A stretch of 64,000 nt of DNA from Basidiobolus meristosporus CBS 931.73. Its lineage: Eukaryota > Fungi > Basidiobolomycota. The position numbers were made by a program, and so were the translations under genes. Numbering within the stretch: position 1 is the first letter of the stretch; each line of letters opens with the position of its first letter. Shown one piece after another: positions 4,089-54,660 of this stretch. A model generated the notes under the pieces. That model was given only the letters and a program-made list of their open reading frames with translations, was not told the origin of the DNA and made no database searches. Location of the stretch: NCBI GenBank assembly GCA_002104905.1, contig MCFE01000220.1, positions 59,798-123,797 on the forward strand, given 5' to 3'.

Positions 4089-4435
4089 TGTTGAAAAATT
4101 TGTATTTCCACCTAAATATTCACCTAACTTAGTCACTTAGATCATTACCTTCATATCCTAGAGAATACTGACCAAGTTCCTTGTTGGGATTTACTTGGAA
4201 TATTTTCACCAAAATACCAGGTACCAGAACATGAAAATTCTCAAAGTTGTCCAAACAGCCCTACGCTTTGCACACATGTTCTTGGGACCTTCCTTAACCT
4301 ATTCTATGTGTTTGTTATGCCAAGACCATGTAAAAGTATAAATACTACTTTTACATTCAATAAATCATTAAGTGAAAACCACATAATCTACTTGTCCTCC
4401 CAATCACTTCCAATATCTCCAAGACTCTTACAGCA
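4089..4435 (+). repeat. Family A 5' LTR (347 bp)
   Basis: TGTTG...CAGCA termini; homologous to copies at 7174, 9167 and 22230; directly followed by the PBS. Confidence 0.85.
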
Positions 4436-4447
4436 GGTTATGAGCCC
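4436..4447 (+). promoter_or_regulatory. Primer binding site GGTTATGAGCCC (half-tRNAiMet type)
   Basis: Abuts the LTR; complementary to the GGGCUCAUAACC anticodon arm of fungal initiator tRNA-Met, as in yeast Ty5. Confidence 0.8.
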
Positions 4448-4466
4448 CAAGCTGTCACTCTCTGCA

Positions 4467-6152
4467 ATGTCTACTACTGCTATTACTGGAATTTTTCCCT
4501 CTGCTGAAATGTTGGATGGATCTAACTACCAAGTGTGGAAGGTGAAGATGAAGATGCTACTACAAGAAAGAGGCCTTTGGGATATTGTCATGGGAGAAGA
4601 ATGCCCTCCTAAAAATGTGGGAGAGGAAGCCTTAAAGTACCAGAAGAAAGAAAAAAGGGCCTTTAACTGCATTTGCCTTAATGTTAAGGACAAATTGCTA
4701 ATTCAATGCTCAAGAGCAAAAATGGCAAAGAATGCCTGGAAGGCATTAGAAGACACCTACCAGTCATGTTCAGCTGCTAAGAAAATGTATCTGAGACAAA
4801 AATTCTTTACTACCAAGATGCTGCCAGGAGAAGAATTGAAAAATCTAATTAACAGAATTACCCTGCTGGTAGATGAGATGGAATCTGTGGGCATACCAAC
4901 TACTGATGAGGATGTGATAGTTACCGTCCTGAATAGCCTGACAGACAGGTTTCAGGGCCTTGTATCAGCCCTAGAGTCCAGAACTGAAGATTTGACCTTA
5001 AATTACATATATGGAAGGCTCCTGGAAGAAGAATTAAGAAAATCAAGCACCAATAAGAAGGAAGAAGAAAATGCTTTAATAAGCAATGATAACCAACAAA
5101 GGAGGTACCCAAGACCCTACAAAGGCAACAGCAACCTGTTTTGCAACTACTGCAAATGGAAAGGACACACATCAGACCGGTGCCTCAAAAAGAAAGATAA
5201 TCAGCAAAAGAAGCCTGAATATGGAAATGCTGCAACAACTAAAGATAGACTATTCATATCTGCACTAAATATGACCACAAACAAGGATTCTCAGATGTGG
5301 TATATTGACTCTGGAGCTTCTCAACACTTTACACACCAAAAAGAACTTTTTACCTAATATCAAGAAATTCCAATTAAGAAGGTTTTCATGGGTGACAATA
5401 GAACACTTGATTCAGTGGGAGAAGGAACTATCCAAGTAAACCTTAGGAGCAGTGAAGGAAGCCATACACCCACCTTTAAAGAAGTACTCTATGTACCAGA
5501 AATAGTCAAGAACCTACTATCTGTAAGCAAGGCCACTGCAGAAGAACTCAGTTTCAGCTTTGACAATTCTGGATGCAAGATCACTGATCAAAATGGTGCC
5601 CAAATTGCTTTGGATATCAGAGATCAGAACCTATACAAGTTGACTTATATTCCATCATATCTGGAAGCCAACATAAGTAACTTAAATGAAGGAACACCAA
5701 TGCTTTGGCACAGGAGATTTGGGCACATCAATTTTGATTATTTGCGCAAAATGATCAAAGATCAGCTAATTTCTGGAGTAAAAATTGATCCCCCAGCTAA
5801 TTTGGAGCACTGTGAAGCCTGCATATATGGGAAACAAGCCAGACAACTGTTCAAGAGCTCTGCGTTAATCAAAACTAAGAAAAAATTAGATCTAATTCAC
5901 TCAGATCTGTGTGGATCTATGCAAAATTTATCCTTAGGCGGGATGAAGTATTTAATCACTTTTATTGAAGATTATACAAGATACACATGGGTCTTCTTCA
6001 TGGAGAGAAAGGAAGAAGCTCTGTCTAAGTTCAGGGAGCTTAAAGCCATGGTGGAGAGAGAAACTGGTGAAAAAATCCAGAAAATACACTCTCACAATGA
6101 TGGGGAATATACCTCAAATCTCTTCATCCACTTCTGCAAAATCATGGGATAA
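4467..6152 (+). pseudogene. Copia A gag-protease-integrase with an in-frame stop at 5355-5357
   Basis: Gag with CNYCKWKGHTSDRC knuckle, protease WYIDSGASQH, GAG-pre-integrase LWHRRFGHIN...CEAC, integrase HSDLCG and IHSHNDGEY. The two ORF-track pieces (4308-5357, 5388-6152) are in the same frame. Confidence 0.85.
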
Positions 6153-7173
6153 AGCAAGACACTACTGTATCATACTCTCACAGCAAGATGATGTAGCAGA
6201 ATATGCAAGTAGTTAAATGACTGATATGGCAAGATATATGACACATGATCAAATAATATCCTATGACTTTTGGGTGTAAGCAGTTGCCACTGCTGTATAC
6301 CTTGAAAATAGTAGTTATAACAAAATACTTGGCAATTCTACTCCAATTGAAGCATAGTAAGGATATAGACCAAGCACAGATCATCTAAAAGAGCTTGGGT
6401 ATACAGCATATGCTAGGAAACTGCCCAGGAATAGGTGAAATTTTCAGTCAAAAATTCAAAACTCTGACAATCAGGATTGCATCAGAGTAAAGCAGTGAAT
6501 ATTTTCTCACTCTGAAAAGCTCTACAACCATGGTGCAGCCTAAATCAGTACTTAAGAATATCCTAGTAGTGAGCATTCCAGTATCACCAACCAGGTTATA
6601 CTGGAAAGAAATAGCAAGATACTAAATTAATGACAGTATGACTTAGCCAATCCCTATTCAGTCCATCTTGATGGGCCCCAGACTGTAAAAGAGGCCCTAA
6701 ATAGTCCTCAGACAAAGTCTTGGAGATCTGCCATGACTGAGGAGTATCTGGCCCTAATGGAAATCAAACCTGGGACTTGATCAAATTACCAGTCAACCAA
6801 AAATTAATTTGATGCAGATTGGTCTTCAAGACAAATTACAATGCTGATTAAACAGATAAGAGATACATAGCAACACTTGTGGCCAATGGATACTTGCAAA
6901 CAAAAATACCTGCCTATAGTAAGACCTTTGCACTGGTACCTAATGTCATGAACACATGACATCCTTGATCTAATATGATTCAGCCATGAAGTTGGTGAAG
7001 AAATCCCAGTTCCTTCCAAAAAATTCTACTACATTCTAGCAACTTCTGGAAAGCTCCAAGTCAATATTACAAAATGGAAAAATCAATGGAAGCTTCCCTT
7101 TGGAGTTTAAATAGCTCAATACCATATATGGTAGGTGCATGTCACATGAACTAGTCACATGACCAGATGACTC

Positions 7174-7521
7174 TGTTGTAAGAGTCTTGGAGATATTTGA
7201 AGTGATATGGGAGGACAAGTAGATTATGTGGTTTTCACTTGATGATTTACTGAATGTAAAGTAGTATTTATACTTTTACATGGTCTTGGCATAACAAGCA
7301 TGTAGAATAGGTCAAGAAAGGTCCCAAGAACATGTGTACAAAGTTTGGGGCTGTTTGGACAACTTTGAGAATTTTCATGTTCTGAGTACCTGATATTTTG
7401 GTGAAAATATTCCAAGTAAACCCAACAAGGAATTTGGTCAGTAGTCTCTAGGATATGAAGGTAATGATCTAAGTGACCAAGTTAGGTGAATATTTAGGTG
7501 GAATTACAAACTTTTACAACA
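7174..7521 (-). repeat. Solo LTR, family A, TSD GACTC
   Basis: Reverse homolog of 4089-4435; GACTC at 7169-7173 and 7522-7526. Confidence 0.88.
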
Positions 7522-9166
7522 GACTCTTGGCATATCTACGTGTGATGTTCTAGTCTGTTCTTTAATATATTTATACCTTAGCACACTTACTGTGCCTCAC
7601 CCCATAGCCCCATTAGTATTTGCCAATATCTCTTGGCATCCATAATGCCAAAAAGTATATATAGTGCTATCCCCCCTTATTTATTCCTCAGTCTGATAAA
7701 CACAGATCTTGAATATACAGCCTTGACTTGAAAATCCATCTTGCCTAGCTCTACTCTCCTGCCTTGTGTCTATTCTCAAGAGCTAGGTTTAATCACATCA
7801 GATTTATATTGGCTATTGCAACCAAGTATTAGCTCTTTATATACCAAATGGTTGTCAAAGCTGCATTTTTGAATGAGGAGCTTAATAAGAACATGTATGA
7901 GAACTAGTCTGATGGATTTGCAAACCAAGACAACCCCTATTTGGTCAGCAGGCTCCATATTCACTATCTGTACTCCAACAGTCACCAAGAGCCTGGAATT
8001 GTGTAGATTCTTATTAGAAATCTTTGAGTTTCCAAAGGGGCACCCCTACTACAGCATATTCTATAAGCCAGATAGAATAGATCCAGCTCTATCAGCTCTA
8101 CATGCTGATGAACTTTTTATAGCTGCCAATAATCTTGACACATTGGAAGATACTAGATCCAGCCTATCTAAGGAGTTCAAGATGTCAGATCTAGAAGATC
8201 TCAGTTACTTATTAGGAATATAGTTCTTCATAGATTGAAGTACCCAGACTATAACCCTAAGCCAACTCAGGTATATTCAATATATGTTAAAGAAGTATCA
8301 AATGGAAAACTTTACACCTACAGCTACCCAAATAGAGACACCTTAAATTGGTCAAAACACAATTGGATTAAGAGAGCTTAGTGCCATCTGAAGACTCTGA
8401 CTATCCTTATCAATTTAAGGTTGGTGGTCTGATGTATATCATGCTTGGAACATGTCCCATATCTGATACCTGATGGGGCTTGTCAGCCTGCATAATCAGA
8501 ACTATGGATCTAAACATATTGCAGCAGTTAAGTAGATTTCAGATATCAACACAGAACTGCTGATATCTGCTTAAGGTACCCCTAGTGGAGTTCAGAACAA
8601 GATTTTGTGAGATGCTTTGACTCTGATTGAGGACAAAATTATGAGGACTGAAGATCCACCACAGGATACACCATTCCCTATGAAAAATAATTTGGTCCTA
8701 CAGGTGGATCCAATCTGGATCAGCCATCAGGATCCTGTTAAGAGACCGTCAAAATACAAGCAGCTTGGAACTAGTGACCCTCTTAACAATCTTATTATGG
8801 GATCATGACAGCGTTTTGCTAATTTTTCTGCCAAATAAAATTATAAAACTTGACAGGACTTTTTTGGTGCTGCAACAATGATTGCATTGCATTATTGAGG
8901 TCTGATTGTGCTCTAGAACTATTTTAAATGGATCCATCTGGCCAGGACATCCAATTGACTTATATGGCAAAAATCTTGACAGCATTTCAATGACCTTACA
9001 GCAAGACTCTGGTAGCATTATAATGGCAGTATGGTGGCCTACAGCTAGTTCTATATAATACTACCATACCAATTCACCAAATGGTATTTTTTCTCTACCT
9101 CCCCTTGTGAAATTCATATACTCCACTGTAGAATCACCCCTCTTTATTTGCTTACCCACTACTACC

Positions 9167-9515
9167 TGTTGTAAGAGTCTTGGAGATATTGGAAGTGATT
9201 GGGAGAACAAGTAGATTATGTGGTTTTCACTTAATGATTTATTGAATGTAAAAGTAGCATTTATACTTTTACCTGGTCTTGGCATTACAAACACGTAGGA
9301 TAGGTTAAGGAAGGTCCCAAGAACATGTGTGCAAACTTTGGGGCTGTTTGGTCAACTTTGAGAATTTTCATGTTCTGGGTACCTGGTACTTTGGTGAAAG
9401 TATTCTAAGTAAATCCCAACAAGGAATTTGGTCAGTATTCTCTTGGATTTGAAGGTAATGATCTAAGTGACTAAGTTAGATGAATATTTAGGTGGAATTA
9501 CAAATTTTTACAACA
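9167..9515 (-). repeat. Solo LTR, family A, TSD CTACC, nested in DNA transposon copy 1
   Basis: CTACC at 9162-9166 and 9516-9520; TG...CA termini. Confidence 0.88.
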
Positions 9516-9529
9516 CTACCTTGGGTATT

Positions 9530-10940
9530 CCACATATATTTCAAATCAAAAAACACTATGACCTCCTACTTACTAACCTCTACAAACACACATACCTGCC
9601 ACAGTTGACATACTTCTATCACCTCAACTTTATGGCTTTTTAATGTGATACTTGCAAAGTTGCCATATACCAAGTACTGCTGGTAACAAATACATCTTGC
9701 AAACAAATGCTTAGTTGTTGCCACTTCTGCCATTAGTACCTCCTGAATATCTGCAATACATATCCAGTTCATCCAGTCCTTGCATTTGTATTGTTGCATA
9801 TGCATATGAATATTAATTGGAGCCTGCAAGAAGTACTTAGGGTAGCAGATACTCTGAAATATCATGCCAATTCCTTCAAATTTCTCCAGTATCTCAAAGG
9901 GCCCATTTAGCTTGAAATGCCCCATGTACAACTTGGCTATCAGTATAGGGATATTGCTGAAAGCAAATACATTGCTCCCTGTAGAAAGCTTTTGATCTAA
10001 CAGATACCCTCATCTTAAGTATCTCTGGTTTCCAGCTGATTCCATATTCCAGCCAATAGCTAATAGCTTGCCAACTTTGCTGCAATTGCATGCTGACTTC
10101 TGTATATTGTCTCTGTGGGAATATGATGTTGTTAGTGCTGGTGTTTTGGTAATAACAATGTGTGTGAGTTATGGAGTATATCCCCTGGATCTGACACATT
10201 TGACAGCAATACTTTCCATTGCGCCTGGAAAAACCTGCTATCTTACTGATGGCTGAGGTATTTCCAATGCAGATAATAATATGAGCTTTTACATCCAGCA
10301 ATAGATAGAGGTAGCTATCCAGGTTGGATGGTGATTTAGGCCCAGATACCAGTATGATTACCAGCATATTATTGCTCTGATACCATAAGATGGGCAGCAG
10401 ACTCAGATTGATGAGAATCAGTGGCCAGAAGGATTTGCTGGTAGTGTACTTGTTCAATGAGAATTAATCAAGTGCTAAGGCAAAAGCATGGTTATACATA
10501 CCTTTAAAGTAGCCCTTGCTTCTTAGCTGTTTTTAATGTTTGCCATCACATATATTGGATATGTTTGTGCCTGATATTAATGGGAACATGCCACTTCTCT
10601 AGCCACAACATTACATCATTCACCAATAGATGGACTACTGGGTTCACTTAACTTGTTAAAGTATCCTTGCCATTTTTTTATGGATGTTGTCTCATTGCAA
10701 AATAGGATTTTGCCAGATTCATGCAGGGTACTGTTGTTAGGGAAGATAGGACCACAATCCATCAGTGAGCCTGCTTCTCCAGAGCTATCAATCTGCGTGC
10801 CATATTCAGAAAGCTGTGGTGAGCCTAAAGGCGTCACAAACTCACCTGACTCAGTTTGCGCAAGGTGACAAAGACAGTCAGTTGCCAATATAAAAGTATC
10901 AACTGGCTGGCAAGATAATGTTGGTACAGTAGTGACCAAT
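9530..10940 (-). pseudogene. Degraded Tnp2-family (Transposase_21-like) transposase
   Basis: Reconstructed motifs DGKH.KQLRSKGYF..AFALALD, SKSFWPLILINLSLLP...SGPKSPSNLDSYL, ICIGNTSAISKIAG..NGKYCCQMCQIQG and QAPINIH..YKCKDWMNW match the fungal En/Spm Tnp2 pattern; many stops and deletions. Confidence 0.75.
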
Positions 10941-11282
10941 GAATGGTCAAATATGACTTGTGTGGCAAAACACTGGCCATGATCCTTGTAATACTTCCTA
11001 TGCTGTCTGCATGCTCTATGGCCAAGAAACTTGCTACAATAGCCACATGGTCTTTTTTATCTTCTGTTATGGTGTTTTATCACAGTAGTCTTGTCCATGG
11101 GGAAAAGAGTTTGACCTTCAACAATGTAATGCTATTATATCACTTTTTGATCAATACATATGTGAATTAAGACAGTCTTGTATTTGAGACATTGCTCCTA
11201 CATGAATGTAAGATTTAATGATGACCTGCCATAGTAAGCATTATAAACAAAGTTGTGGCACCACATACACACTAATACATAA

Positions 11283-12014
11283 GACTTGTTCCATTGGAGA
11301 GTGCCACATTGAGCCATGAGTGCCAAATGATGCCATAGTGTGCCAGAGAGGCCAAGAGAGCCTCTACCTGGCCACAGAGTGTGAAACATAGCTCTGCATC
11401 TTCATGCAAAGCAGCCTCTGTGTTTCACCCATTGTGTTGGAGAAAATCCATTTTTTGACCTTTTTTTTTGGATCAATGTTGTGCAGGATGTGTTAGAGCA
11501 CAAGCAGATTGAAGATATGCATCTGGTACTCAATACCCATGGCACTCTGAATCTAGCTCCTGTAGCTTGTATCATGTCACAAAAATGAATGGCACTATCT
11601 TGGTCCACTGGTATTATCTGGCACTATATTTAAATATTAGCCCTAAAGTAAGATATATACAAAGCACTTATAGTGCCAGATAATACCAGTGGACCAAGAT
11701 AGTGCCATTCATTTTTGTGACATGATACAAGCTACAGGAGCTAGATTCAGAGTACCATGGGTATTGAGTACCAGATGCATATCTTCAGCTCTCCTGTGCT
11801 TTTTCACATCCTGAGCTACATTGGTCCACAAAAAAAGGTCAAAAAATGGATTTTCTCCTGCACAATGGGTGAAACACAGGGGCTGCTTTACATGAAGATG
11901 AAGAGCTATGTTTCACACTCTGTGGCCAAGTATAGGCTCACTTGACCTCTCTGGCACACTATGGCATCATTTGGCACTCATGGCTCAATGTGGCACTATC
12001 CAACGGAACAAGTC
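11283..12014. repeat. 732-bp palindrome: 346-bp inverted arms (11283-11628, 11669-12014) and a 40-bp spacer
   Basis: Starts GACTTGTTCC and ends GGAACAAGTC; the inner ~115 bp of the arms are nearly perfect inverted copies. Confidence 0.92.
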
Positions 12015-12056
12015 TATAATACTTTTTCCCATTTGGTTTGATACACTTGCATATAT

Positions 12057-14200
12057 ATGCCACCAAAAAAGAAAGCAAAGTTGTCTGGTTCCCAGCCAAA
12101 CCCCACAGCTGATGGCAGCAGAAGAACAGTTGGACAACAGCTTGCTTTGACATTCAGTGCAACAAGCAGGGTTACATCCAAAAAAGACCATGTTAACAGT
12201 GTGCCCACTGAAGGTAATAATGCAGACTCCTCAGGCTCTCAGTCAAGTAGGCAATTGAAACGTCTGCAGAGCTGCAAGCTGACAATTATGCTCAGGCAGA
12301 TGAGAATGTAGCAAACACAGTACCCTCAGTTGAAGACCAGCAAGTAGCTCTCATAACATCACCACCACACATATTAGCAATTATGTTGTCATTGCATACC
12401 AAAGCATTAATGAAGCAATTAGGTGCAGTGGCTGGTAAGATAGATGCAATGGCCCAGAGAAATCAGGTAATAATCTAGAAACAGGATGAGCAGATAATAC
12501 ATGTAAAGCAGTCAATATCCCAGGTAGAGAAAGCTGTATCATTGCTGCAAAGAAGAAACTCTAGTTGCTCAATGCCACAGCCATGAAATGAGCCATTTCC
12601 CAATGTAACAGCAGAGGAACACTGTACAGTTTTTAAGCACAACAACAGTGCCCAAAGATGAAGACCACAGAAAAGCCTATCACAGCATGGGAGTAAGACA
12701 ATGTGGTGTTTGTACCAAAGCCTAAAAATCAAAAGACATTGAAGATCCATGAAGCCATTGAGTGCAATAATGAAGAGTGGGCTAACATCAAGAGGCCGGC
12801 AGAAGTCTAGCATGCCATCACCTTAAGGCCTGCATGCCATACAATCATCAGGAACTTAAGGTCAAGCAGAATGCACTTGACTTGTTCCATGACCATTATC
12901 CTGGATTCAAATGGGTAAATGGATTTTGGGCAAGCATTGGTATGCTAAGAAAGTATCTTAGGAATAGAAGATACTATCATAGGCAGAAGAACAATGGTGC
13001 CATAGCTAAAAACCATCATCTTCCTCAAGGGCCCATTACAAGCAGGGCCAAAAGCTCCAGACAAGTGTCAAAGAGATGTCAGGTGGCCAGAAGAGTGCCC
13101 ATTAGGGACAAGCAGGCAGACATAGATGCACCAGTCCAACATTTATCAAGGAAAAGTGTAGTACCACTCAAGAAGCACTCAGTCAAAGTAGCTGTGATGG
13201 ACCTGGCAGTGACAGAAACCAGAGGCTTTTACAGGAGCCCATCATAACTATGGTGATGAGCTCAAAACAGGTGGAAAAGAATTGTCAGGTTGCCAGGAGA
13301 GTGCCAGCAAGTGACAGGCAGGCCAAAACAGATGTGTCAGAGCAGAACCTATCAAGGAGAAAATGTAGATCATTACAAGAAGCACTCAGACATAGTAGCA
13401 GTCAAAGACCTGGCAGTGATAAAGGAAAAGGTAAAGGGAAAAATGCCTACCCAGGCCTAAGACATGGAGGCATGCAAAAAAAACCACAGCTCTTGCCAAT
13501 TAACACCGCAATCCCAGAACAGACTGAATACTATCATAGCCAAGAAGAATTACCAACAAGAAAACAGTTGTTTTCACAAGAGTTGGAAGCACATTCAGTT
13601 GAGCTACACTCCAGCAAGGTAGATGACTTTGCAGAAAAAGGCAATATGTCTAACACAGCCTCCATTTCCTCTGTTATTGTGAGAGTAGAGATCTCACTGA
13701 CAGACAAGGCATAACATCAAGAACTCAAAAGACTATCACAATGCCTTCAGTGGTATTTTGAAACATTAATAGGCACACCAAGAGGTTGCAGCACTTCTTC
13801 AAGAGCAGTGCTCAAGAAAACACACCTGAAAGTTGCAGGGATCTATTGCAAAGACTGGCAGATGAGGTTCTAGACCTTGTAGTGCTGGCTGAATACCAGG
13901 ATGTATGGGAACCAATGAATGAACAGTGGCATAAAGCTGTTTGGTTTCTGCCAAAGTTGTGAGACCAGAGTGTTACAGCAGAAATATTTAATGAGTGGTG
14001 TGTTTAATGGAGCTACTTGTTGAGTGTGGGGTTAGGCTTAATGTTAGTGTAGGGTATAGGGACTTGTATAGGTCCATACAATTGGGAATTGAGGTACAAC
14101 TGAAGTTTCAACAGAAACAAATCAGTTTGTATGCATGAAAAGTAAGAGAAACAGTTGAGTCAGGAGGTAAGGGGTGTGAAAAGTGGCAATAGCTAAGCAA
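12057..14200 (+). pseudogene. Degraded second ORF (ORF2) of the DNA transposon; function unknown
   Basis: Begins MPPKKKAK (NLS-like). Block HHLKACMPYNHQELKVKQNALDLFHDHYPGFKWVNGFWASIGMLRKYLRNRRYY recurs at ~29350-29560 (-), ~47500-47690 and ~56530-56720. Confidence 0.6.
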
Positions 14201-14855
14201 TGCACACAAACATAGGAGGTGATAGAGTGTCCAGGATCAGAAAGTGAGTAAGTTGGCTAGGAATCAGTCCATAGCCACTCATATATTGTTGTAATTAAAG
14301 ATTTTGACTATGTGTTTTGTGAAATCTGGGGTGCTATTATTTCTCAATGGTCACTGGACAGTGTCCTGATGGGATTAGTGCCTCTTAGTCATGGGACTTC
14401 AAATTTGTGAAGGCCTTTGACAAGATCATTATAATATTTTTTCATAGGGCATTATTTACTGTAAAAGTGCAATTTCATGGAAAGCTATTAGCTGTAGCAA
14501 TTTCTACCACAGAGGCGGAGTATATGGCAGCCTGTGATGTTACTCAAAGAGTATTGTGGTTAAGAAAGCTCTCTAAAGATTTAGGCTAATGCCAAAATAT
14601 GCCCATTACCTTATTTCAAGATAATCAAGATGTATTCAAAGAGGTAAAAGTCTAGCTCTCAATGCTAAAGCAAAGCACCTAGATATTAGACATCACTTGA
14701 TATGTGAAGCTATAGAGAATAACTTGGTTAACTTAGTTTGCTGTCTTACATGTGTAATAATTGCAGACACATATGCCAAGCCATTAGCTAGAGGCATATA
14801 TCTTAGGACAAGATTAGGGCCAGTCAGTATGATCATTTACTTGACTATAGGTGTT

Positions 14856-21983: not shown

Positions 21984-22690
21984 TGTTGGAATAATTAGAG
22001 GTCCACCTAGTAACTAACATTTCTTGAACTAGTGCTTGATAAGATGATGTATTTCAGAATGATAACTATGAGTGCTATTTTGGAGGTGATTTGGAGAATC
22101 AAAGATTGATGATATTGACTTGTTGTTTCCTTGATTTACAACACAATATTTATGCTTATTGCAGAGCTACATAAATGTGCTAGTTTAGTCATTATTAGGG
22201 GAGACTGAGGAGTACAAGTGCCAAGTTCCAGTTGTAAAAATTTGTAATTCCACCTAAATACTCACCTAATTTAGTCACTTAGTTCATTACCTTCAAACTA
22301 TAGAGAATATTGACCAAATTTCTTGTTGGGATTTACTTGGAATACTTTGAGAATATTCATGTTCTGAGAACCTGATATTTTGGTGAAAGTTGTCCAAGCA
22401 GCCCCAAACCTTGCCCAAATGCTCTTGGGACTTTTGTAAATCAACTTAATGTGTTTTCTATGCCAAGACCTTGCAAAAGTATAAACACTACTTTTACATT
22501 CAATAAGTTATAAGTGAAACCACATAATCTGCTTGTTCTTGCAATCACTTCCAATATCTCCAAGACTCTTACAGCTGTTCCAGCTCATTTGGACAAGTTA
22601 CAGGTTTTCCAAATATTCAGTACTTCACTAATTTCTAAAGATTAGCAAATATCATATGCACTAACATCTAATAATTTAGCCACCAACTTG
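21984..22690. repeat. Family F LTR relic with an apparent internal inversion, interrupted by an A-family LTR
   Basis: 21984-~22065 matches the start of 30599-30947 forward; ~22070-22690 matches the rest of it in reverse. Confidence 0.5.
22230..22576 (+). repeat. Solo LTR, family A, with atypical AG...CT ends
   Basis: Homologous to 4089-4435; flanked by GTTCC(A) on both sides. Confidence 0.8.
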
Positions 22691-23687: not shown

Positions 23688-26600
23688 TGTTATGATCTGC
23701 CGCTTGAATGTTTAAGTTAGATCAGTTTTTAGTCAAATCAGTTAGTATATGTTTAGGTTATCGGTATAACAGTATTATCTATGAAATCAGTAGCATTAGT
23801 CAGCAAATGAATCAGCAGATCCTTATCAGACAGAAATAGATATATTAAGTAGGATCTTATTGGGTGATGATGATGCAATCAAATGAGTCATCAGCCACAA
23901 CCTACATTAGGAAATACAATTAGCCAGCAATTGATCTGGCAAAATGTATATAAGGAGCTGCTGGAACCTCAATAAAAATCAGTTCAAGTTTTAGTGAATA
24001 CAATACTAGCTAAACTCCCTATTCCTCTACAACTCTTATACCAAGACTTGTAACATTGGTAGCAGCAATAACCAGAAACCTCCCTCCTGAAGAAAGAAGA
24101 AACCACCCTCAAGATGTTGGACAATCAAGAATGGAAGAATGCCATGCAGCAAATCCTGGCCCAACAGCAACAGTTACTCCAGATCCTCAGCCAACAGCAA
24201 CAAGGAATGACTACCATGGCTCAGAACCAGCAAAGCCCTGTTAAGAGCAACTTTAGTGTGAAGGTCAACCAGTACCATGGCAGAGTCAATGAAAACCTGG
24301 GAACTTGGCTCTTTCAGATTGAAGAAGCTTTTAAAGCTAAAGGAATTGCTCCAGAGAGCAAGTTGCATTATGCAGCTTCTTACCTGGCAGATGCAGCTTT
24401 ACAGTGGTACCACAACAAGATCAGGTCAGCCACTATGATGGGATGCTCTACAATCTCTACCTGGGATGAGTTTGTGTTGGAAATTCAGGATGCTTTTGAA
24501 CCTCCACACCAGCAGACACTACTAAGAAGGAAGTTAAAGACACTCAGACAGAAAGGAATGGTGCAAGAATATATCTATGAGTACAGATGTCTACTTGGGC
24601 AAATTGAAAGAATGGACCCCTTGGATCAAGTTGAATACTTTATTGATGGGTTGAAAGAAAGAACTCGCAAGGAAGTGAATTACCAAAGACCTCAGACTAT
24701 TGAAGCCATCAAGATTGCCATTGACTATGACTCAGCTATGTTTGGAGTTGGGAAGCCTACAGTGACTAATCAGAAAGGCTACAATCATTATGAAAGAAGA
24801 CAGTCAGAAGCAGTACCAATGGAAATAGACGCTATGCAGAAGAATCCTGCCTTGGAAGAATGTAAGAAGAAAGGACTTTGCTTCAATTGCCACCAGCAAG
24901 GACATATCGCAAAGTACTGCCCTCAGAGAAGAAATGGACACCAGCCATCAAGAACCTTCAACCGCATTGAGGCCATGGAGCATAGTAACATGAAGAAGAC
25001 TCAGAACTCACCTTCCACATGACTGAAGAATACCTATCCTAGATGACCTCAAACTCAGGAAAGCTATTATACTTGAATGGAGTAATTAATGGAGTACCTG
25101 CCAAGATCATGATTGACTCAGGAGCGTTGCATGAATACATGTCAGAGCAATTTGCCTTGAAAGCTGGAATCAACTCAGAACCTACCAAATCAACTTCAGT
25201 CTCCACAGCTGATGGGAACTCTCACATAATCAACCATATGACCCAGCCAGTAAGAATGAAGATCAATGACCATGAAGAAGACCTACAGGCTTATATATTT
25301 GGGAACTGCAAGTTTGACCTTGTACTTGGAAAAACCTGGCTACTTTGTTGTAATCCATCAATCAACTGGAGAATCCATGCAACTCAGATCCAAAAGGACA
25401 ACAAGACCTATGAGCTATTACCTGCCAGGTTGGATTTCAACTTGGTCAATTCCAGTGTGTGTGAGACAAGTGAACTTAGCAAGACCCAGTTCTGTGGAGC
25501 ACTTAGAAAAGGTACCAAGATGTTCCTCATGGCTGTATTACAGGAGGATTCTGCTACCCCAGCACCCCAGCAGGTCCACACTCTCTTGAAGAAATATTTG
25601 GACGTGTTTCCAGATGAGGTTGTAAGCCTACCACCAGTCAGAGATGTGGATCATGCCATTGACACAGGAGATAGCCCTCCAGTGAGCAAGACACCTTACA
25701 GAATGAGTCCATCCCTAAGACAGCATTCAGGACCAGATATAGACATTACAAGTACTTAGTCATGAGTTTTGGCCTCACCAATGCCCCTGCAACTTTCATG
25801 ACCCTGCTGCAGACTCTCTTCCAGGAGTACTTAGACAAGTTTGTCATAATCTACCTAGATGATATACTAATATACAGCAAGACAGAAGAGGATCACTTGG
25901 TGCACATTGAAAAGGTCTTGAAGAAGCTAAGAGAGAACAAGCTTTACGGCAAGCTACCCAAGTGTGAATTCTTCAAGGAACACGTAGAATATCTGGGACA
26001 CATAGTGACTAGCACAGGAGTAACCTTAGACCCAAAGAAGGTGGAAGTAATCAAGAATTTGAAGCAGCCCCATAGCATATCAGAATTCAGATCATTCATT
26101 GGAATGGTTTCCTATTATTGGAGATTTGTCAAGTCTTTTGCAAGTATTGTAGCCCCTTTAACTGATATCCTCAAGAAAGACAATACCTACAAGTGGGACA
26201 TAGCTTGTGAGACTGCCTTCCAGACGCTCAAGAATGAACTTGCTAAGCTGCCAAGCCTAAGAATACCAGACTTCAGAAAAGAGTTCACTCTGTGCACAGA
26301 TGCTTCAGATTATGCAATTGGTGGAGTGCTGAGCCAAGAACACAAGGGAAAGGACTACCCTGTTGCCTTTGAATCCAAGAAACTGAACTCAGCAGAACAA
26401 AACTATCCAGTCCATGAGAAGGAGATGTTACCTATAATACACTGTTTGAAGACATGGAGATGCTATATTGAAGGAGTCAAATGCACTGTGAAGACTGATC
26501 ATACCTCCCTCAAGTATATATTTACTCAGAAGGTACTCTCTAGAAGAATGACAAGATGGAGTGAATACATTCAGCAATTTGACCTGGTGATTGTCTACTG

Positions 26601-28326
26601 CCCTGGAAAAAACAACACGGTTGCTGACGCCTTATCAAGATTGGATGAAGTTGCACAACTCAACTTGGTGCATGAATCAGATTGGCCTAGCCTATTACCT
26701 AAGTACTTGGAGGACCAAGCCATTCCTAATGAGGTGGATGAAGATATCAAGAAGATAATCCGTGATGAAGCCAGCAAATTTGTAGTACAGGATGAAACAC
26801 TCTACCAAATTGTTGATGGAAGCCCTATTGCCTATTGCCCTTATGTTTCTCGCCTGGATTTAATACATAAGCTACACAATGGATATGGACATCTTGGGAT
26901 TGAAGGAACCTATAGCCTTGTGAATGCCAGAGCATGGTGGCCCAGAATGAAACAAGATATGGAGAAGCTAATGAAAATATGCCCAAACTGCCAAATCAAT
27001 CAAGGCCAGCCACAAAGAATTGCCAAACTCTTCCCTTTGGATCCTGTAAGACCATTTGAGAGATGGGGAATTGACTTTATTGGAAGACTGCCAACTACCA
27101 GGAAATGCAACCATTGAATCCTAGTAGCTATTGACCATGCCACTAAATGGCCAGGTGCTAAAGCTGTACCAATAGCCAGTGAACAAGAAGTTGCAAGTTT
27201 CATTTACCATGAGATCCTGATGAAGTTTGGATGCCCTGTGGAGATCTTATCCAATAGAGGCGCAAACTTTATGGCAAAAACACTGGAGGCTTACCTGGAA
27301 ATGCAGCAGATCAGACACTTGAAAACCTTGGCATATCACCCCAGAACTAATGGAGTCACTGAGCGGTTTAATGGATTATTTGGAAAAATGCTGACCAAGT
27401 ATGCAAATGGAGTTGTCAGTAGATGGGATGAGTATATAGACCAAGCACTCTTTGCATGCAGAGTCAGAGTACACAACACCACCCAGCATTCACCATTTTA
27501 CTTAGTGTATGGATGTGAACCAAGGATTCCAGGAGATCTCACACAACCAAAGCTTACAGACACCTTAGAAGATGAACTCAGTCAGCCAAGTAGACACCAG
27601 CAACTGGAACAAAGATGTCAAGAGGCACAGACCAAAGTATCTCAAAGTGCAGAAAAGATGAAGCAGAGATTTGATAAGACTATAGCACCAGAAGCATTGA
27701 CAGTTGGGAACTTTGTATTGCTAAGAAACAACACTTGGAAGAAGTTTGAGCCACAATGGACAGGACCATTCAAGATCATCAGAGAATGTCCATTTGCAAC
27801 TTACCAACTGGTGGACAAAAAAGGCAATATCCAGGAAGACTTAGTGCATAGGGACAGACTCAAGCTTGCAAGACTTGCTGACAATACTGAACCGTCAAGA
27901 TATTGGTATCACAAGAAAAGAGATTCAGGAGAACCCTCTGAACTTTAGTACGGGAGAATGTTACAATCTGCCGCTTGAATGTTTAAGGTATATCAGTTTT
28001 TGGTCAAATCAATTAGTATATGTTTAGGTTATCAGTATATCAGTATTATCTATGAAATCAGTAGCATTAGTCAGCAAATGAATCAGCAGATCCTTATCAG
28101 ACGGAAATAGATATATTAAGTAGGATCTTATTGGGTGATGATGATGCAATCAAATGAGTCATCAGCCACAACCTACATTAGGAAATACAATTAGTCAGCA
28201 ATTGATCTAGCAAAATGTGTATAAGGAGCTGCTGAAACCTCAATAAAAATCAGTTCAAGTTTTAGTGAATACAATACTAGCTAAACTCCCTATTCCTCTA
28301 CAACTCTTATACCAAGACTTGTAACA
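23688..28326 (+). mobile_element. Ty3/gypsy family B copy E1 (defective), LTRs 23688-24055 and 27959-28326, TSD GACC
   Basis: gag-pol broken by a ~13-bp deletion near 24990, a ~283-bp RT deletion near 25712 and a W>stop at 27115. About a dozen LTR differences by eye. The empty-site homolog near 14080 has a single GACC. Confidence 0.93.
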
Positions 28327-28329
28327 GAC

Positions 28330-29600
28330 CTATGCAAGTTGCTACACCCTACACTCAACAAGTAACTCCATTTGAATCCACCATTCAGTAAGTATTTTTG
28401 TTGAAATATTCTATTTTCATGACTTAAGCTGGAAACAAATTTGGCAGAAACCAAACAGCTTTATGCCACTGTTCATTCACTGGCTCTCATATAACCTGGT
28501 CTTAAGCCAGCACTGCAAGGCCTAGCACCTCATCAGCCAGTCTTTGCAATAAATCCTTGCCATATTCAGGTGCGTTTTCTTGAGCACTGCTCTTGAAGAA
28601 GTACTGCAACCTCTTGGTGTGCCTATTAGTATTCCAGAATTCCACTGAAGGCATTGTGATAGTCTTTTGAGTTCTTAAGTGTTGTAGCCTTGTCTGTCAG
28701 CATGTTCTCCACTCTGTCAACAATTAAGGATATGGAGGCTGTGGTAGACAAGTTGACTATCTCTGCAAACTCATCTATTACACTGGAGTGTAGCTCAACT
28801 GGCTGTGCTTCCAATTCTTGGAAAACTGCTGTTTTCTTGCTGATAAATCTTCTTGGCTATGATGGGATTCAGCCTGTTCTGGGCTTACAGCATTAATTGG
28901 CAAGAACTGCAACTTTTTTCTTATGTTTCCCTGACTCTGGCTTAGGTAGACTTTTTGCCATGTTGCTTTTCATTGATCACTGACAGGACTTTCACTGCTG
29001 CTTTGTCTGAATACTTATCATATTGAGCTGCATTTTATCCTTGAAAAATGCTGCTTTGATGCATCTGCTTTGACCTGCTGGTCCCTTGCTGGCACTCTGT
29101 GGGCAACCTGATGCTTCTTTCCCACTTGTTTCAAGCTCTCAGCATATCATGTGACAGGCTCCCAAAGTAGCCACTTGTTTTTATCACTGCCAGGTCATTC
29201 TCTACTACCTTGACAGAGCACTTCTTGAGTGGAACTGCGCTTTTCCTTAATAAATGTTGTGCTGGTGCATTTGTGTCTGCCTGCTTTTCCCTTATCAGTA
29301 CTCTTACAGCTACCTGGTGTCTCTCTGTCACTTATTTGGAGCTTTTAGCTCTGCTTGTAATGGGCACTTGCTGAAGCCACTGGTTTTTAGCAATTGCACC
29401 CTTATTCTTCTGCCTTTGATAGTTTCTGCTTTTTTTGAGATATTGTTGTGGCATACCAGTGCCAGGCCAAAATCCATTTGCTTGTTTAAATCCAGAATAA
29501 TACTTATGGAACAAGTCATGCACATTCTGCTTGGCCTTGAGTTCATGATGGTGCATGATTCTTTGGCAGCATACATAGAGAAGTAAGTTGAACTAAAGGA
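28330..29600 (-). pseudogene. ORF2 relic of DNA transposon copy 3 (continues at ~23400-23687)
   Basis: Reverse homolog of ~12800-14090, e.g. MEAQPVELHSSVIDEFAE versus ELEAHSVELHSSKVDDFAE. Confidence 0.7.
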
Positions 29601-29747
29601 GAAACAGCTATATATATACATGTGTATGGGGTGGTCAAGACCAAAGGGGAAATGGTGTTACATATACATGTGTATGTGGTGTAACAACTTTATTTATAAT
29701 GCTTACTATGGTGGGTCATCATTGAATCTTACATTCATGCAGGTGCA

Positions 29748-30116
29748 TGTTGCAATTTAAGAAGTGATTTGGATATAAGGAACTTATCAAGAAATAGTGA
29801 TAATAGTTGAACTGTTGTTTATTCATAAAGAAGCTCAGTATTTATACCTTTGTAGAAGTAATACAGCTGCAACACTAAGTAGGGAGGGTTTCTCAATATT
29901 CAGGAGCATTCTGTAACAGTTTCAGGGTTAGTACATAATGTTTGGTAATAGTGCTAATTTGATCCTGACTATAGGGGAATAATCATAAGATCATATATCT
30001 GGAGAAAGTGGCAAAGTTAAGGCAGTAAATGAGTCCTATAGTGACTAAGACTAGCCTAGAATTGTTAAGTAAATTTTTAGCTGCTGAATGATACCAAATA
30101 GTCCAATATTTCAACA
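29748..30116 (-). repeat. Young solo LTR, family C, TSD GTGCA
   Basis: Near-identical to 36121-36489; GTGCA at 29743-29747 and 30117-30121. Confidence 0.92.
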
Positions 30117-31425: not shown

Positions 31426-31805
31426 ATGTGATGTTGTGGCCAGTGAAGTGCACATCTATTGTAATATCAGTAATAGGGGATTTGCAAGTTCATTAATACT
31501 ACTTGCCAAAATCATCCTCGGATGCAACTTACCATATATATAGTAAAAACAGACAACTGTTATGTGGGTGGGAACCTATGGCCCTGAGACCATCCAGATT
31601 CCAGCATGTATTAAGAGTTACATGGAATTCACATCAGAAAATGCCACCATTGCAAGGTGTTCAACTTGTCAGGAATCTACCACCATTAGGGGAAAGCATT
31701 GTTTACATTCCAATATATTTGAGTAATACCCATCAAATAAAGCCCATGCAGTCTAAGATGTATTACAAAGCTATATAGTGCCACACTCAGAATTGATCAA
31801 GGGTA

Positions 31806-41451: not shown

Positions 41452-44400
41452 TGTTACAAGTCTTGGTATAAGAGTTGTAGAGGAATAGGGAGTTTAGCTA
41501 GTATTGTATTCACTAAAACTTGAACTGATTTTTATTGAGGTTCCAGCAGCTCCTTATATACATTTTGCCAGATCAATTGCTGACTAATTGTATTTCCTAA
41601 TGTAGGTTGTGGCTGATGACTCATTTGATTGCATCATCATCACCCAATAAGATCCTACTTAATATATCTATTTCTGTCTGATAAGGATCTGCTGATTCAT
41701 TTGCTGACTAATGCTACTGATTTCATAGATAATACTGATATACTGATAACCTAAACATATACTAATTGATTTGACTAAAAACTGATCTAACTTAAACATT
41801 CAAGCGGCAGATCATAACATTCTCCCCTACTAAAGTTGAGAGGGTTCTCCTGAATCTCTTTTCTTGTGATACCAATATCTTGATGGTTCAGTATTATCAG
41901 CAAGTCTTGCAAGCTTGAGTCTGTCCCTATGCACTAAGTCTTCCCGGATATTACCTTGCTTGTCCACCAGTTGGTAAGTTGCAAATGGACATTCTCTGAT
42001 GATCTTGAATGGTCCTGTCCATTGTGGCTCAAACTTCTTCCGAGTGTTGTTTCTTAGCAATACAAAGTTCCCAACTGTCAATGCTTCTGGTGCTATAGTC
42101 TTATCAAATCTCTGCTTCATCTTTTCTGCACTTTGAGATACTTTGGTCTGTGCCTCTTGACGTCTTTGTTCCAGTTGCTGGTGTCTACTTGGCTGACTGA
42201 GTTCATCTTCTAAGGTGTCTGTAAGCTTTGGTTGTGTGAGATCTCCTGGAATCCTTGGTTCACATCCATAAACTAAGTAAAATGGTGATTGCTGGGTGGT
42301 GTTGTGTACTCTGACTCTGCATGCAAAGAGTGCTTGGTCTATATACTCATCCCATCTACTGACAACTCCATTTGCATACTTGGTCAGCATTTTTCCAAAT
42401 AATCCATTAAACCGCTCAGTGACTCCATTAGTTCTGGGGTGATATGCCGAGGTTTTCAAGTGTCTGATCTGCTGCATTTCCAGGTAAGCCTCTAATGTCT
42501 TTGCCATAAAGTTTGCACCTCTATCGGATAAGATCTCCACAGGGCATCCAAACTTCATCAGGATCTCATGGTAAATGAAACTTGCAACTTCTTGTTCACT
42601 GGCTATTGGTACGGCTTTAGCAACTGGCCATTTAGTGGCATGGTCAATAGCTACTAGGATCCAACGGTTACATTTCCTGGTAGTTGGCAGTCTTCCAATA
42701 AAGTCAATTCCCCATCTCTCAAATGGTCTGACAGGCTCCAAAGGGAAGAGTTCGGCAATTCTTTGTGGCTGGCCCTGATTGATTTGGCAGTTGGGGCATG
42801 TTTTCACTAGCTTCTCAATATCTTGTTTCATTCTGGGCCACCATGCTCTGGCTTTCACAAGGCTATAGGTTCCTTCAATCCCAAGATGTCCATATCCATT
42901 GTGTAGCTTATGTATTAAATCCAGGCGAGCAACATAAGGACAATAGGCAATAGGGCTTCCATCAACAATTCGGTAGAGTGTTTCATCCTGTACAACAAAT
43001 TTGCTGGCTTCATCCCGGATTATCTTCTTGATATCTTCATCCACCTCATTAGGAATGGCTTGGTCCTCCAAGTACTTTGGTAATAGGCTAGGCCAATCTG
43101 ATTCATGCACCAAGTTGAGTTGTGCAACTTGATCTAATCTTGATAAGGCATCAGCAACCGTGTTGTTTTTTCCGGGACAGTAGACAATCTCCAGGTCAAA
43201 TTGCTGAATGTATTCACTCCATCTTGTCATTCTTCTAGAGAGTACCTTCTGAGTAAATATATACTTGAGGGAGGCATGATCAGTCTTCACAGTGCATTTG
43301 ACTCCTTCAATATAGCATCTCCATGTCTTCAAACATTGTATTATAGCAAGCATCTCCTTCTCATGGACTGGATAGTTTTGTTCTGCTGAGTTCAGTTTCT
43401 TGGATTCAAAGGCAACAGGGTAGTCCTTTCCCTCGTGTTCTTGGCTCAGCACTCCACCAATTGCGTAATCTGAAGCATCTGTGCATAGAGTGAACTCTTT
43501 TCTGAAGTCTGGTATTCTTAAGCTTGGCAACTTAGCAAGTTCATTCTTTAGCGTCTGGAAGGCAGTCTCACAAGCTATGTCCCACTTGTAGGTATTGTCT
43601 TTCTTGAGGATATCAGTTAAAGGGGCTGCAATACTTGCAAATGACTTGACAAATCTCCGATAATAGGAAACCATTCCAAGGAAGGATCTGAGTTCTGATA
43701 TGCTATGGGGCTGCTTCAAATTCTTGATTACTTCCACCTTCTTGGGGTCTAAGGTTACTCCTGTGCTAGTCACTATGTGTCCCAGATATTCTACGTGTTC
43801 CTTGAAGAATTCACACTTGGCTAGCTTGCCATATAGCTTGTTCTCTCTTAGTTTCTTCAACACCTTTTCAATGTGTACCATGTGATCCTTTTCTGTCTTG
43901 CTGTATATCAATATGTCATCCAGGTAGATTATCACAAACTTGTCTAAGTACTCCTGAAAGACAGTCTGCATCAGCGTCATGAATGTTGCAGGGGCATTGG
44001 TGAGGCCAAAACTCATGACCAAGTACTCGTAATGTCCATATCTGGTCCTGAATGCTGTCTTAGGGATATCTTCTGGTTTCACCCTAATCTGGTTGTATCC
44101 TGACATGAGGTCAATCTTGCTGAAAATAGTGGCTCCATTAAGTTGGTCTAAAAGCTCATCAATCCGAGGTATGGGGTACTTATTCTTGACGGTAACTGAG
44201 TTCAGGGCTCTGTAGTCAATGCACATCCTAAGTGTTCCATCCTTCTTTTTCACAAAAAGCACTGGTGCTCCCCAGGGTGACTTGCTGGGCCTGATGTATC
44301 CTTGCTCCAATAGCTGATCAATTTGTCTCTTCATTTCGTCCAATTCCAATGGACTCATTCGGTAAGGTGTCTTGCTCACTGGAGGGCTATCTCCTGTGTC

Positions 44401-46390
44401 AATGGCATGATCCACATCTCTGACTGGTGGTAGGCTTACAAGCTCATCTGGGAACACGTCTGAATATTTCTTCAAGAGAGTCTGGACCTGCTGGGGTGCT
44501 GGGGTAGAGGAATCCTCCTGTAATACCGCCATGAGGAACATCTCGGTACCTTTTCTAAGTGCTCTACAGAACTGGGTCTTGCTAAGTTCACTTGTCTCAC
44601 ACACACTGGAATTGACCAAGTTGAAATCCAGCCTGGCAGGTAATAGCTCATAGGTCTTGTTGTCTTTTTGGATCTGAGTAGCATGGGTTCTCCAGTTGAT
44701 TGATGGATTACGACAAAATAGCCAGGTTTTCCCAAGTACAAGGTCAAACTTGCAGTTCCCAAATATATAAGCCTGTAGGTCTTCTTCATAGTCATTGATC
44801 TTCATTCTTACTGGCTGGGTAATACGGTTGATTATGTGGGAGTTCCCATCAGCTGTGGAAACTGAAGTTGATTTGGTAGGTTCCGAGTTGATTCCAGCTT
44901 TCAAAGCAAATTGCTCTGACATGTATTCATGCGATGCTCCTGAGTCAATCATGATCTTGGCAGGTACTCCATTGATTACTCCATTCAAGTACAATAACTT
45001 CCCTGAGTTTGAAGTCATTTGGGACAAGTACTCTTCTGTCATATGGAAGGTGAGTTCCGAGTCTTCTTCAAGCTCATCTTTCACATTACTGTGTTCATGG
45101 GACTCAATATGGTAGAAGGTTCTTGTTGGCTGGTGTCCATTTCTTCTCTGAGGGCAGTACTTTGCAATATGTCCCTGCTGGTGGCAATTGAAGCAAAGTC
45201 CTCTCTTCTTGCATTCTTCTGAGGAGGGGTTCTTCTGCATAGCGTCTATTTCCATTGGTACTGCTTCTGATTGTCTTCTTTCATAATGATTATAGCCTTT
45301 CTGATTAGTCACTGTAGGCTTCCCAACTCCAAACATAGCTGAGTCATAGTCAATGGCAATCTTGATGGCTTCTTCAATAGTCTGAGGTCTTCGGTAATTG
45401 ACTTCCTTGCGAGTTCTTTCTTTCAACCCATCAATAAAGTATTCAACTTGATCCAAGGGGTCCATTCTTTCAATTTGTCCAAGTAGACATCTGTACTCAT
45501 AGATGTATTCTTGCACCATTCCTTTCTGTCTGAGTGTCTTTAACTTCCTTCTTAGTAGTGTCTGCTGGTGTGGAGGTTCAAAAGCATCCTGAATTTCCGA
45601 CACAAACTCATCCCAGGTAGAGATTGTAGAGCATCCCATCATAGTAGCTGACCTGATCTTGTTGTGGTACCACTGTAAAGCTGCATCTGCCAGGTAAGAA
45701 GCTGCATAATGCAACTTGCTCTCTGGAGCAATTCCTTTAGCTTTAAAAGCTTCTTCAATCTGAAAGAGCCAAGTTCCCAGGTTTTCATTGACTCTGCCAT
45801 GGTACCGGTTGACCTTCACACTAAAGTTGCTCTTGACAGGGCTTTGTTGGCTCTGAGCCATGGTAGTCATTCCTTGTTGCTGTTGGCTGAGGATCTGGAG
45901 TAGCTGTTGCTGTTGGGCCAGGATTTGCTGCATGGCATTCTTCCATTCTTGATTGTCCGACATCTTGAGGGTGGTTTCTTCTTTTCTTCAGGAGGGAGGT
46001 TTCTGGTTATCGCTGCTACCAATGTTACAAGTCTTGGTATAAGAGTTGTAGAGGAATAGGGAGTTTAGCTAGTATTGTATTCACTAAAACTTGAACTGAT
46101 TTTTATTGAGGTTCCAGCAGCTCCTTATATACATTTTGCCAGATCAATTGCTGACTAATTGTATTTCCTAATGTAGGTTGTGGCTGATGACTCATTTGAT
46201 TGCATCATCATCACCCAATAAGATCCTACTTAATATATCTATTTCTGTCTGATAAGGATCTGCTGATTCATTTGCTGACTAATGCTACTGATTTCATAGA
46301 TAATACTGATATACTGATAACCTAAACATATACTAATTGATTTGACTAAAAACTGATCTAACTTAAACATTCAAGCGGCAGATCATAACA
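41452..46390 (-). mobile_element. Ty3/gypsy family B copy E2, intact; LTRs 46023-46390 (5') and 41452-41819 (3'); TSD ATTG
   Basis: 368-bp LTRs identical by eye; PBS TGGTAGCAGCG at 46021-46011; PPT AGTAGGGGAGAA; ATTG at 41448-41451 and 46391-46394. Confidence 0.97.
41830..45963 (-). CDS. Single-frame gag-pol polyprotein, 1377 aa (gag, CCHC, PR, RT, RNase H, IN, GPF motif; no chromodomain)
   Basis: [40 protein letters not shown]...CPNC, WGIDF/SDRGANF/NGVTER, WTGPF. Confidence 0.96.
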
Positions 46391-46399
46391 ATTGCTCCT

Positions 46400-53733: not shown

Positions 53734-53930
53734 CCTGCTGGATTCTGGACCCCCTTATAGGGGCACTCTGGCTCTTGTTTGTGAGGATCCATCACTGAAT
53801 ATTATAAATATTGACTTGTGATAAGGAGAAACCTAGTATGTCTTGGCTCAGAAGGCCACTTAAATAAATATACATCCAGTTCATCCTGTTCTTACATTTA
53901 TATAGCTGCATATGCATATGCCAGTATATA

Positions 53931-54660
53931 GACTTGTTCTGTTGGATAGTGCCACACTGAGCCATTAGTGCCAAATGATGCCATAGTGTGCCAGGGAGAC
54001 TAAGCAAACCTATACTTGGCCACAAAGTGTGAAACATAGATCTGCATCTTCATGCAAAGTAGCCCCTGTGTTTCATCTATTTTGTTGGAGAAAATCCATT
54101 TTTTGACCTTTTTTTTAGGTCAATGTTGCGCAGGATGTTTAAGAACACAAAAGGATTGAAATATGCATTTGGCACTCAATACCCATGCCACTCTGAATCT
54201 AGCTCCTGTGGCTTGTAACATGTCACAAAAATGCATGGCATTATCTTGGTCCACTGGTACTATCTGGCACTATAAGTACTTTGTAGAGATCTTACTTTAG
54301 GGCTAATAATTAAATATAGTGCCAGATATTATCAGTGGACCAAGATAGTGCCATGCATTTTTGTGACATGTTACAAGCCACAGGAGCTAGATTCAGAGTG
54401 TCATGGGTATTGAGTACCTGATTCATGTCTTCTATTCTTCTGTGCTCTTACACATCCTCCACAACATAAATATACAAAAATACGTCAAAAAAAGGATTTT
54501 CTCCTGCATCATAGGTGAAACACAATGGCTGCTTTGCATGAAGATGTAGATCTATGTTTCACACTCTGTGGCCAAGTATAGGCTCACTTGGCCTCTCTGG
54601 CACACTATGGCATCATTTGGCACTCATGGCTCAATGTGGCACTATCCAACAGAACAAGTC
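53931..54660. repeat. 730-bp palindrome, second copy (arms 53931-54274 and 54315-54660; 40-bp spacer)
   Basis: Homologous to 11283-12014; its spacer is the reverse complement of the copy 1 spacer. Confidence 0.92.

Follow-up and report, generated by a model that had tools for sequence, protein, structure and literature searches.

The window, by which we mean the whole 64-kb stretch of DNA analysed here, carries at 38-2810 the C-terminal part of MCM6 (plus strand) and the Nup98-96 autopeptidase (minus strand) in sequence of 51-56% G+C, and its remainder is a transposon nest with a G+C content of 35-44%. Ty3/gypsy-type LTR retrotransposons lie nearly intact at 41452-46399 (minus strand) and 49021-53734 (plus strand), with an older copy at 23688-28326; the two nearly intact copies are 98% identical to each other, their LTRs are 99% identical and their ORFs encode 1377 and 1239 aa, and the closest protein to the 1377-aa ORF in a set of 5.8 billion is only 40% identical. 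A DNA transposon of about 5.8 kb occupies 8676-14449 on the plus strand and is bounded by the ends CCCTATGAAAAA and TTTTTTCATAGGG. One of its ORFs (9894-10457, minus strand) matches the Tnp2 domain (PF02992) with 27.9 bits, which is below the cutoff of 28.6, and we refer to the element as Tnp2-type and to this copy as host copy 1, since two further units are nested in it: a palindrome, which is the subject of this analysis, and a 352-bp TG...CA unit at 9164-9515, which has a 5-bp duplication (CTACC) on its two sides and is missing in host copy 3. Units similar to the latter occur at 4089-4438, 7173-7521 and 22231-22573; two of them enclose copia-type gag/integrase ORFs (4308-6152) and are 92-94% identical to the nested unit, which is therefore probably a solo LTR derived from the copia-type element. 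A BLAST comparison of host copy 1 with the window recovered three further copies, all of them heavily interrupted.

The palindrome, unit 1, spans 11282-12015 and is an inverted repeat of 734 bp, consisting of a left arm L1 (11282-11628, plus sense, terminus AGACTTGTTCC), a loop of 40 nt (11629-11668) and a right arm R1 (11669-12015, minus sense), the reverse complement of which is 92.5% identical to L1. The arms measure 347 nt each and are 92.5-93% complementary, so that 694 of the 734 nt (94.5%) are arm, while the loop matches its own reverse complement at only 10 of 40 positions and is thus not palindromic. Folded as single-stranded DNA, the unit is predicted to form one hairpin of -380.6 kcal/mol, compared with -89 +/- 4.5 kcal/mol for shuffled sequences (z = -65). 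The palindrome of about 730 bp that had been noticed in a preliminary description of the locus is therefore borne out. Immediately outside the arms the triplet ATA is found at 11279-11281 and again, identically, at 12016-12018. The ends of the unit read AGACTTGTTC, and in a scan of the window an exact AGACTTGTTCYRTTGGA terminates each of the six arms that belong to this family, two in each of two complete units plus two solo arms; these six arms, all from one window, are the basis of every statistic given below. When the terminus was written as a degenerate 17-nt pattern, nine matches were obtained where 0.93 were expected, and the six exact ones are each an arm end. Inside the terminus of L1 the motif GCCA is found at positions 22, 32, 41, 51, 61 and 70 of the arm, that is about every 10 bp, and three copies of the opposite-sense motif TGGC(AC) lie beside the loop. 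Tandem Repeats Finder reports no array for these subrepeats, whose spacing is 9-10 bp across positions 22-70. Five arms have conserved the phased motifs, while the most diverged one, the solo arm A4 described below, retains part of them, and they look like a candidate protein-binding array in helical phase.

In order to place the palindrome relative to its surroundings we compared the copies of the Tnp2-type element with each other. When unit 1 and one ATA are removed from host copy 1, the remaining sequence aligns without a break to host copy 3 (reverse complement of 29560-29760), with homology on both sides, and host copy 3 accordingly presents an empty site at 29650-29665 on the minus strand. 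Host copy 4 also lacks the unit, in a less clean alignment; the earlier statement that copies 3 and 4 are without it is thereby confirmed, cleanly for the former. A second complete unit, unit 2, occupies 53930-54661, with a left arm L2 at 53930-54274 (plus sense), a loop at 54275-54314 and a right arm R2 at 54315-54661 (minus sense, 88.1% identical to L2). It is preceded by the triplet TAT (53927-53929), which is repeated at the start of the sequence following it. Its left flank (53735-53929) matches positions 9755-9808 of host copy 1 at 85%, and once unit 2 and one TAT are taken out, the remainder aligns collinearly to host copy 1 through about 9811-9813, at which point that copy reads TAT and thus carries the empty target. 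The two complete units are therefore both enclosed in perfect 3-bp duplications, ATA for unit 1 and TAT for unit 2.

Beyond unit 2 follow two solo arms, A3 (55012-55362) and A4 (55712-56059), both in right-arm sense (minus). The sequence on the outer side of A4 is, from its first base, homologous to the part of host copy 1 that starts at 12305, and both sequences read AAT (56060-56062 and 12305-12307, the latter being the empty target in host copy 1). The host insertion positions are thus 11281 for unit 1, about 9811-9813 for unit 2 and 12305 for A4, and the window accordingly holds three independent insertions, at different positions within old copies of the Tnp2-type host. That the flanks of the two complete units are unrelated from the first base beyond AGACTTG and CAAGTCT, as had been described before, is explained by these different host positions.

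The unit's own 3-bp duplications, in combination with the empty sites and the different positions in the host, mark it as a discrete mobile insertion rather than a part of the host element. We conclude, with a probability of roughly 85%, that the palindrome is a 734-bp non-autonomous DNA transposon of the foldback type, a miniature inverted-repeat transposable element (MITE), that inserted three times and was subsequently reshaped by recombination. It has the terminal inverted repeats, the small non-coding body, the target duplications at complete copies and the unoccupied paralogous sites of a MITE, and it consists almost entirely of arm with a short unpaired middle, as is characteristic of foldback elements. 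Among the proposals made in the preliminary description, a foldback or MITE element landing repeatedly in this host is the one that the three sites, the duplications and the paralogous empty sites bear out, including its suggested association with deletions, for which one half element at a deletion junction provides an instance. Its rating as the best candidate for an undescribed system is not supported. The unit appears to be an ordinary foldback MITE that bears the recombination traces common in inverted repeats.

Assignment to a superfamily is less specific. The duplicated or flanking triplets (ATA, TAT and the flank AAT) are 3 bp long and composed of A and T only, a pattern that fits either PIF/Harbinger or CMC/EnSpm, both of which are highly abundant DNA transposons in Basidiobolus genomes (PMC5751038). 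With Tourist-like MITEs of the PIF/Harbinger group the unit shares the 3-bp A/T duplication, the small size and the lack of coding capacity, but the triplets differ from the canonical TAA/TTA. With non-autonomous CACTA (CMC-EnSpm) elements it has the 3-bp duplication and the repeated subterminal motifs in common; its ends, however, read AGACTTGTTC and neither begin with CACTA nor resemble the CCCTATG of the Tnp2-type element in the window, the ends of which (CCCTATGAAAAA and TTTTTTCATAGGG) are unrelated to those of the foldback unit. In overall architecture it resembles Drosophila FB, the deletion derivatives of Galileo, and Tetris, which likewise have long arms, a short middle, no coding sequence and repeated arm motifs. 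It departs from these in that its arms carry only about six GCCA motifs in 10-bp phase and no long internal tandem arrays, in its duplication of 3 bp, where P/Galileo, FB or Tetris have 7-10 bp, and in its occurrence in an early-diverging fungus.

All ORFs of the unit are 81 aa or shorter and have no match in Pfam, and a search with one arm ORF returned no homologue from the set of 5.8 billion proteins, which, to judge by the 40% identity of the best relative of the 1377-aa retrotransposon protein, evidently does not contain the repeats of this genome. Two scans of metagenome contigs for exact patterns gave no matches, nor did one scan of prokaryote genome contigs. The possibility that the arms were derived from the host or from another element in the window was rejected, as they show no similarity to the rest of the 64 kb (best E about 1). 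Within the window there is likewise no autonomous element with AGACTTGTTC ends, no Harbinger transposase and no longer element carrying the foldback ends, and a literature search found no published description of this family in Basidiobolus. The mobilising transposase would be encoded elsewhere, and it would probably act by binding the GCCA motifs inside each end; integration duplicates a 3-bp target consisting of A and T only.

The region downstream of unit 2 has a more complex structure. The host-derived flank of unit 2, termed X (54662-55011, plus strand), begins with the right TAT duplication, and its first 70 nt or so are collinear with host copy 1 beyond 9813. A second copy, X' (55363-55711, plus strand), is 97% identical to X and lies between A3 and A4. 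R2, A3 and A4 thus follow each other in the same sense at intervals of 700 bp with the two X copies between them, so that 54315-56059 forms about 2.5 copies of a 700-bp tandem unit made up of a foldback arm and 350 bp of host-derived flank, an array that Tandem Repeats Finder misses since its period exceeds 500. A4 is a half element: it comprises a full right-type arm and lacks both the loop and the left arm. Its junction with X' on the inner side falls no more than about 3 nt from the boundary between arm and loop, and its outer end adjoins host position 12305. Two other readings of A4 and its neighbour were considered and rejected. An arm-only element that inserted by itself would not account for the absence of a duplication (TAT on one side, AAT on the other) and for flanks that correspond to non-adjacent host positions, and the end of X beside A4 is not a remnant of the loop, as the X-like copy at 31473-31801 has that sequence without an arm. 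This 329-bp segment belongs to host copy 3, where a solo LTR and an LTR retrotransposon adjoin it, and is 70% identical to X and X' (positions 22-350 of X align to 31801-31474); its counterpart in host copy 1 amounts to only about 47 bp, and host copy 1 may therefore have lost part of the element by internal deletion.

A3 combines the features of its two neighbours. At the diagnostic columns it is R2-like in 50 cases (columns 28-336) and A4-like in nine, eight of which fall in the innermost 20 nt or so. A recombinant of R2 and A4 is the product expected of unequal crossover, and the array would have arisen by such an exchange between same-sense arms 700 bp apart. One copy would have broken at the centre of its palindrome, so that its loop and left arm disappeared together with about 2 kb of the host. 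A central break would agree with the observation that rearrangements focus on the centres of palindromes with small spacers (PMC8327919), and the arms of Tetris, the sequence of which can seed tandem repeats, offer a foldback precedent for the array (PMC4079207). The half element broken at its centre and the 700-bp tandem array are what is new in this window.

The loops of the two complete units are reverse complements of each other (11629-11668 against 54275-54314: 36 of 40 positions, compared with 13 of 40 in forward alignment), as had been noted in the preliminary description. The argument built on this, namely that the copies have the same orientation and yet differ in their spacers, assumed one shared host site and falls with the distinct sites at 11281 and about 9811-9813. 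As the units are independent insertions, their orientation in the host is uninformative, and the arms are the valid reference. We therefore aligned the four arms of the complete units in one sense, counted the site patterns and used A4 to polarise the changes. Eight columns group the arms by copy, five by side (156, 157, 187, 222 and 226) and one crosswise. The two left arms share three changed columns where 0.56 would be expected (p = 0.013) and the two right arms four where 0.71 would be expected (p = 0.003). The crossed pairs serve as an internal control for hypervariable columns, and they share one change each (0.31 and 0.55 expected), neither of which is significant. The signal for collinear arms therefore comprises seven columns, five of them with identical states, all within 156-226, the most variable part of the arm.

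These patterns indicate that the middle parts of the arms of units 1 and 2 are collinear on the plus strand while their loops are opposite, and we consider it likely that the loop was truly flipped. The simplest explanation is a single exchange between the inner arms of one unit, within columns 227-347, which would be sufficient to invert the loop and leave the middle and outer arms unmoved. Intrachromatid recombination between palindrome arms is known to invert the spacer, with rearrangements concentrating at the centre of symmetry (PMC8327919); in the palindromes of the primate X and Y chromosomes, for which this was described together with arm-to-arm conversion and central deletions, the dimensions are tens of kilobases as opposed to 0.7 kb here, and the present unit is, unlike them, mobile. 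The alternative is that no flip took place, that unit 2 is simply the whole element inserted in the opposite orientation, and that the sharing by side is noise from hypervariable columns. For independent insertions both orientations are equally likely a priori; whole-unit BLAST identity is 88.2% in reverse and 86.4% in forward alignment, mainly due to the loop; A4 carries a mix of left and right states at the by-side columns, which are thus not clean side markers; and the parsimony sites concerned are few (five same-side, one crossed). Hypervariability would, however, be expected to affect the crossed pairs as well, whereas the excess of shared changes is found in both same-side pairs and is absent from the crossed ones, and the summed arm distance is smaller for same-side pairs (77) than for crossed pairs (86). 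We therefore regard a simple reverse insertion as unlikely. Nothing points to a programmed switch: the two loop states occur on two separate insertions rather than at one locus, and no recombinase gene was found near the unit.

A true flip of the loop would imply exchange between the arms of one unit, and arm-to-arm copying is also suggested by the substitutions themselves. The two arms of copy 2 share seven changed columns, five of them with the same base, where 1.34 would be expected (p = 8e-5), and those of copy 1 share two, with 0.33 expected (p = 0.04). The mirrored substitutions are therefore real, and copying from arm to arm would have occurred somewhere in these lineages, with conversion mirroring some substitutions most clearly in that of copy 2. 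The long inverted ends of Galileo, which exchange and convert sequence, are a comparable case (PMC3573991). The more specific proposal that the arms were homogenised within each copy can be retained only in part. The quoted inner-arm variants do exist (alignment columns 283, 291 and 307) and the mirrored changes are significant, in particular for copy 2, but arm identity within copy 2 (88.1%, compared with 92.5% within copy 1) is no better than between copies (87-89%). In the inner 86 nt, which are conserved across every arm comparison, one and three mismatches are found within copies as opposed to five or six between them; this tendency is in the proposed direction but not significant (Fisher p = 0.11), and the variants ascribed to copy 1 are also present in the independent solo arm A4. 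They are thus marks of a subfamily rather than private to the locus and do not demonstrate conversion in place.

One host family received all three insertions, although it makes up only between about one fifth and one third of the sequence predating the young LTR retrotransposons; from this share of the window we roughly estimate p at about 0.01-0.04 for three out of three, so that random choice of targets accounts for the pattern only moderately well. A target preference for the host family is no more than suggested by this figure, and a preference for A/T triplets in an old transposon island could explain it as well. An extended version would have the foldback family prefer Tnp2-type targets and drive their structural decay, in view of the one insertion at a deletion junction and the one that seeded a tandem array, and would have its loop invert repeatedly, with inversion continuing in nuclei today. 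It appears very improbable to us; if it were correct, both loop states should be encountered at a single locus in long reads.

It has further been proposed that the palindrome is a source of hairpin RNA, with read-through transcripts folding into a 347-bp hairpin that feeds RNA interference, a role that would be compatible with a MITE. The predicted hairpin is near-perfect, and long-hairpin plant MIR families of Rfam match the unit with E values down to 4e-24. All of these matches stay below their gathering scores (at 11535-11762, MIR810, MIR447 and MIR2630 reach 104-114 bits where 144-200 are required), and such scores are expected of any long hairpin, so that membership in a MIR family was rejected and the matches are put down to the structure. 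Furthermore, the drift of the arms to 88-92% identity argues against selection on their pairing, and we consider a role in RNA interference very unlikely.

The first proposal of the preliminary description, by which the unit would belong to the Tnp2-type host itself as an invertible cassette or a symmetric promoter between two divergent genes, is rejected. Unit 1 is indeed situated about midway along host copy 1, with ORFs of opposite orientation on its two sides. But the homologous site is cleanly empty in host copy 3 and, in the less clean alignment, also unoccupied in host copy 4; unit 2 and A4 are found at other positions of the host, and the unit possesses target duplications of its own and no associated recombinase gene. 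The two arms differ at 26 positions within unit 1 and at 43 within unit 2, units with target duplications sit inside collinear host sequence and the family recurs at three places in the window, and a false palindrome assembled from chimeric long reads is thus practically negligible as an explanation.

For the annotation of this genome it follows that the unit is to be masked under the heading of foldback MITEs and not treated as a regulatory cassette of its host, and repeat libraries would gain modestly from a curated consensus; beyond annotation its importance is small. The window does offer a compact example of four known fates of such palindromes, namely loop inversion, partial arm conversion, central breakage and unequal crossover, which would help to explain why this repeat-rich genome has its Tnp2-type elements in so rearranged a state. 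The sequence at 12877-12888 is additionally identical to 12 nt of the foldback terminus (GACTTGTTCCAT); with no extended similarity around it, this match is probably due to chance. It lies inside the right-hand ORF of the host and is kept in host copy 3.
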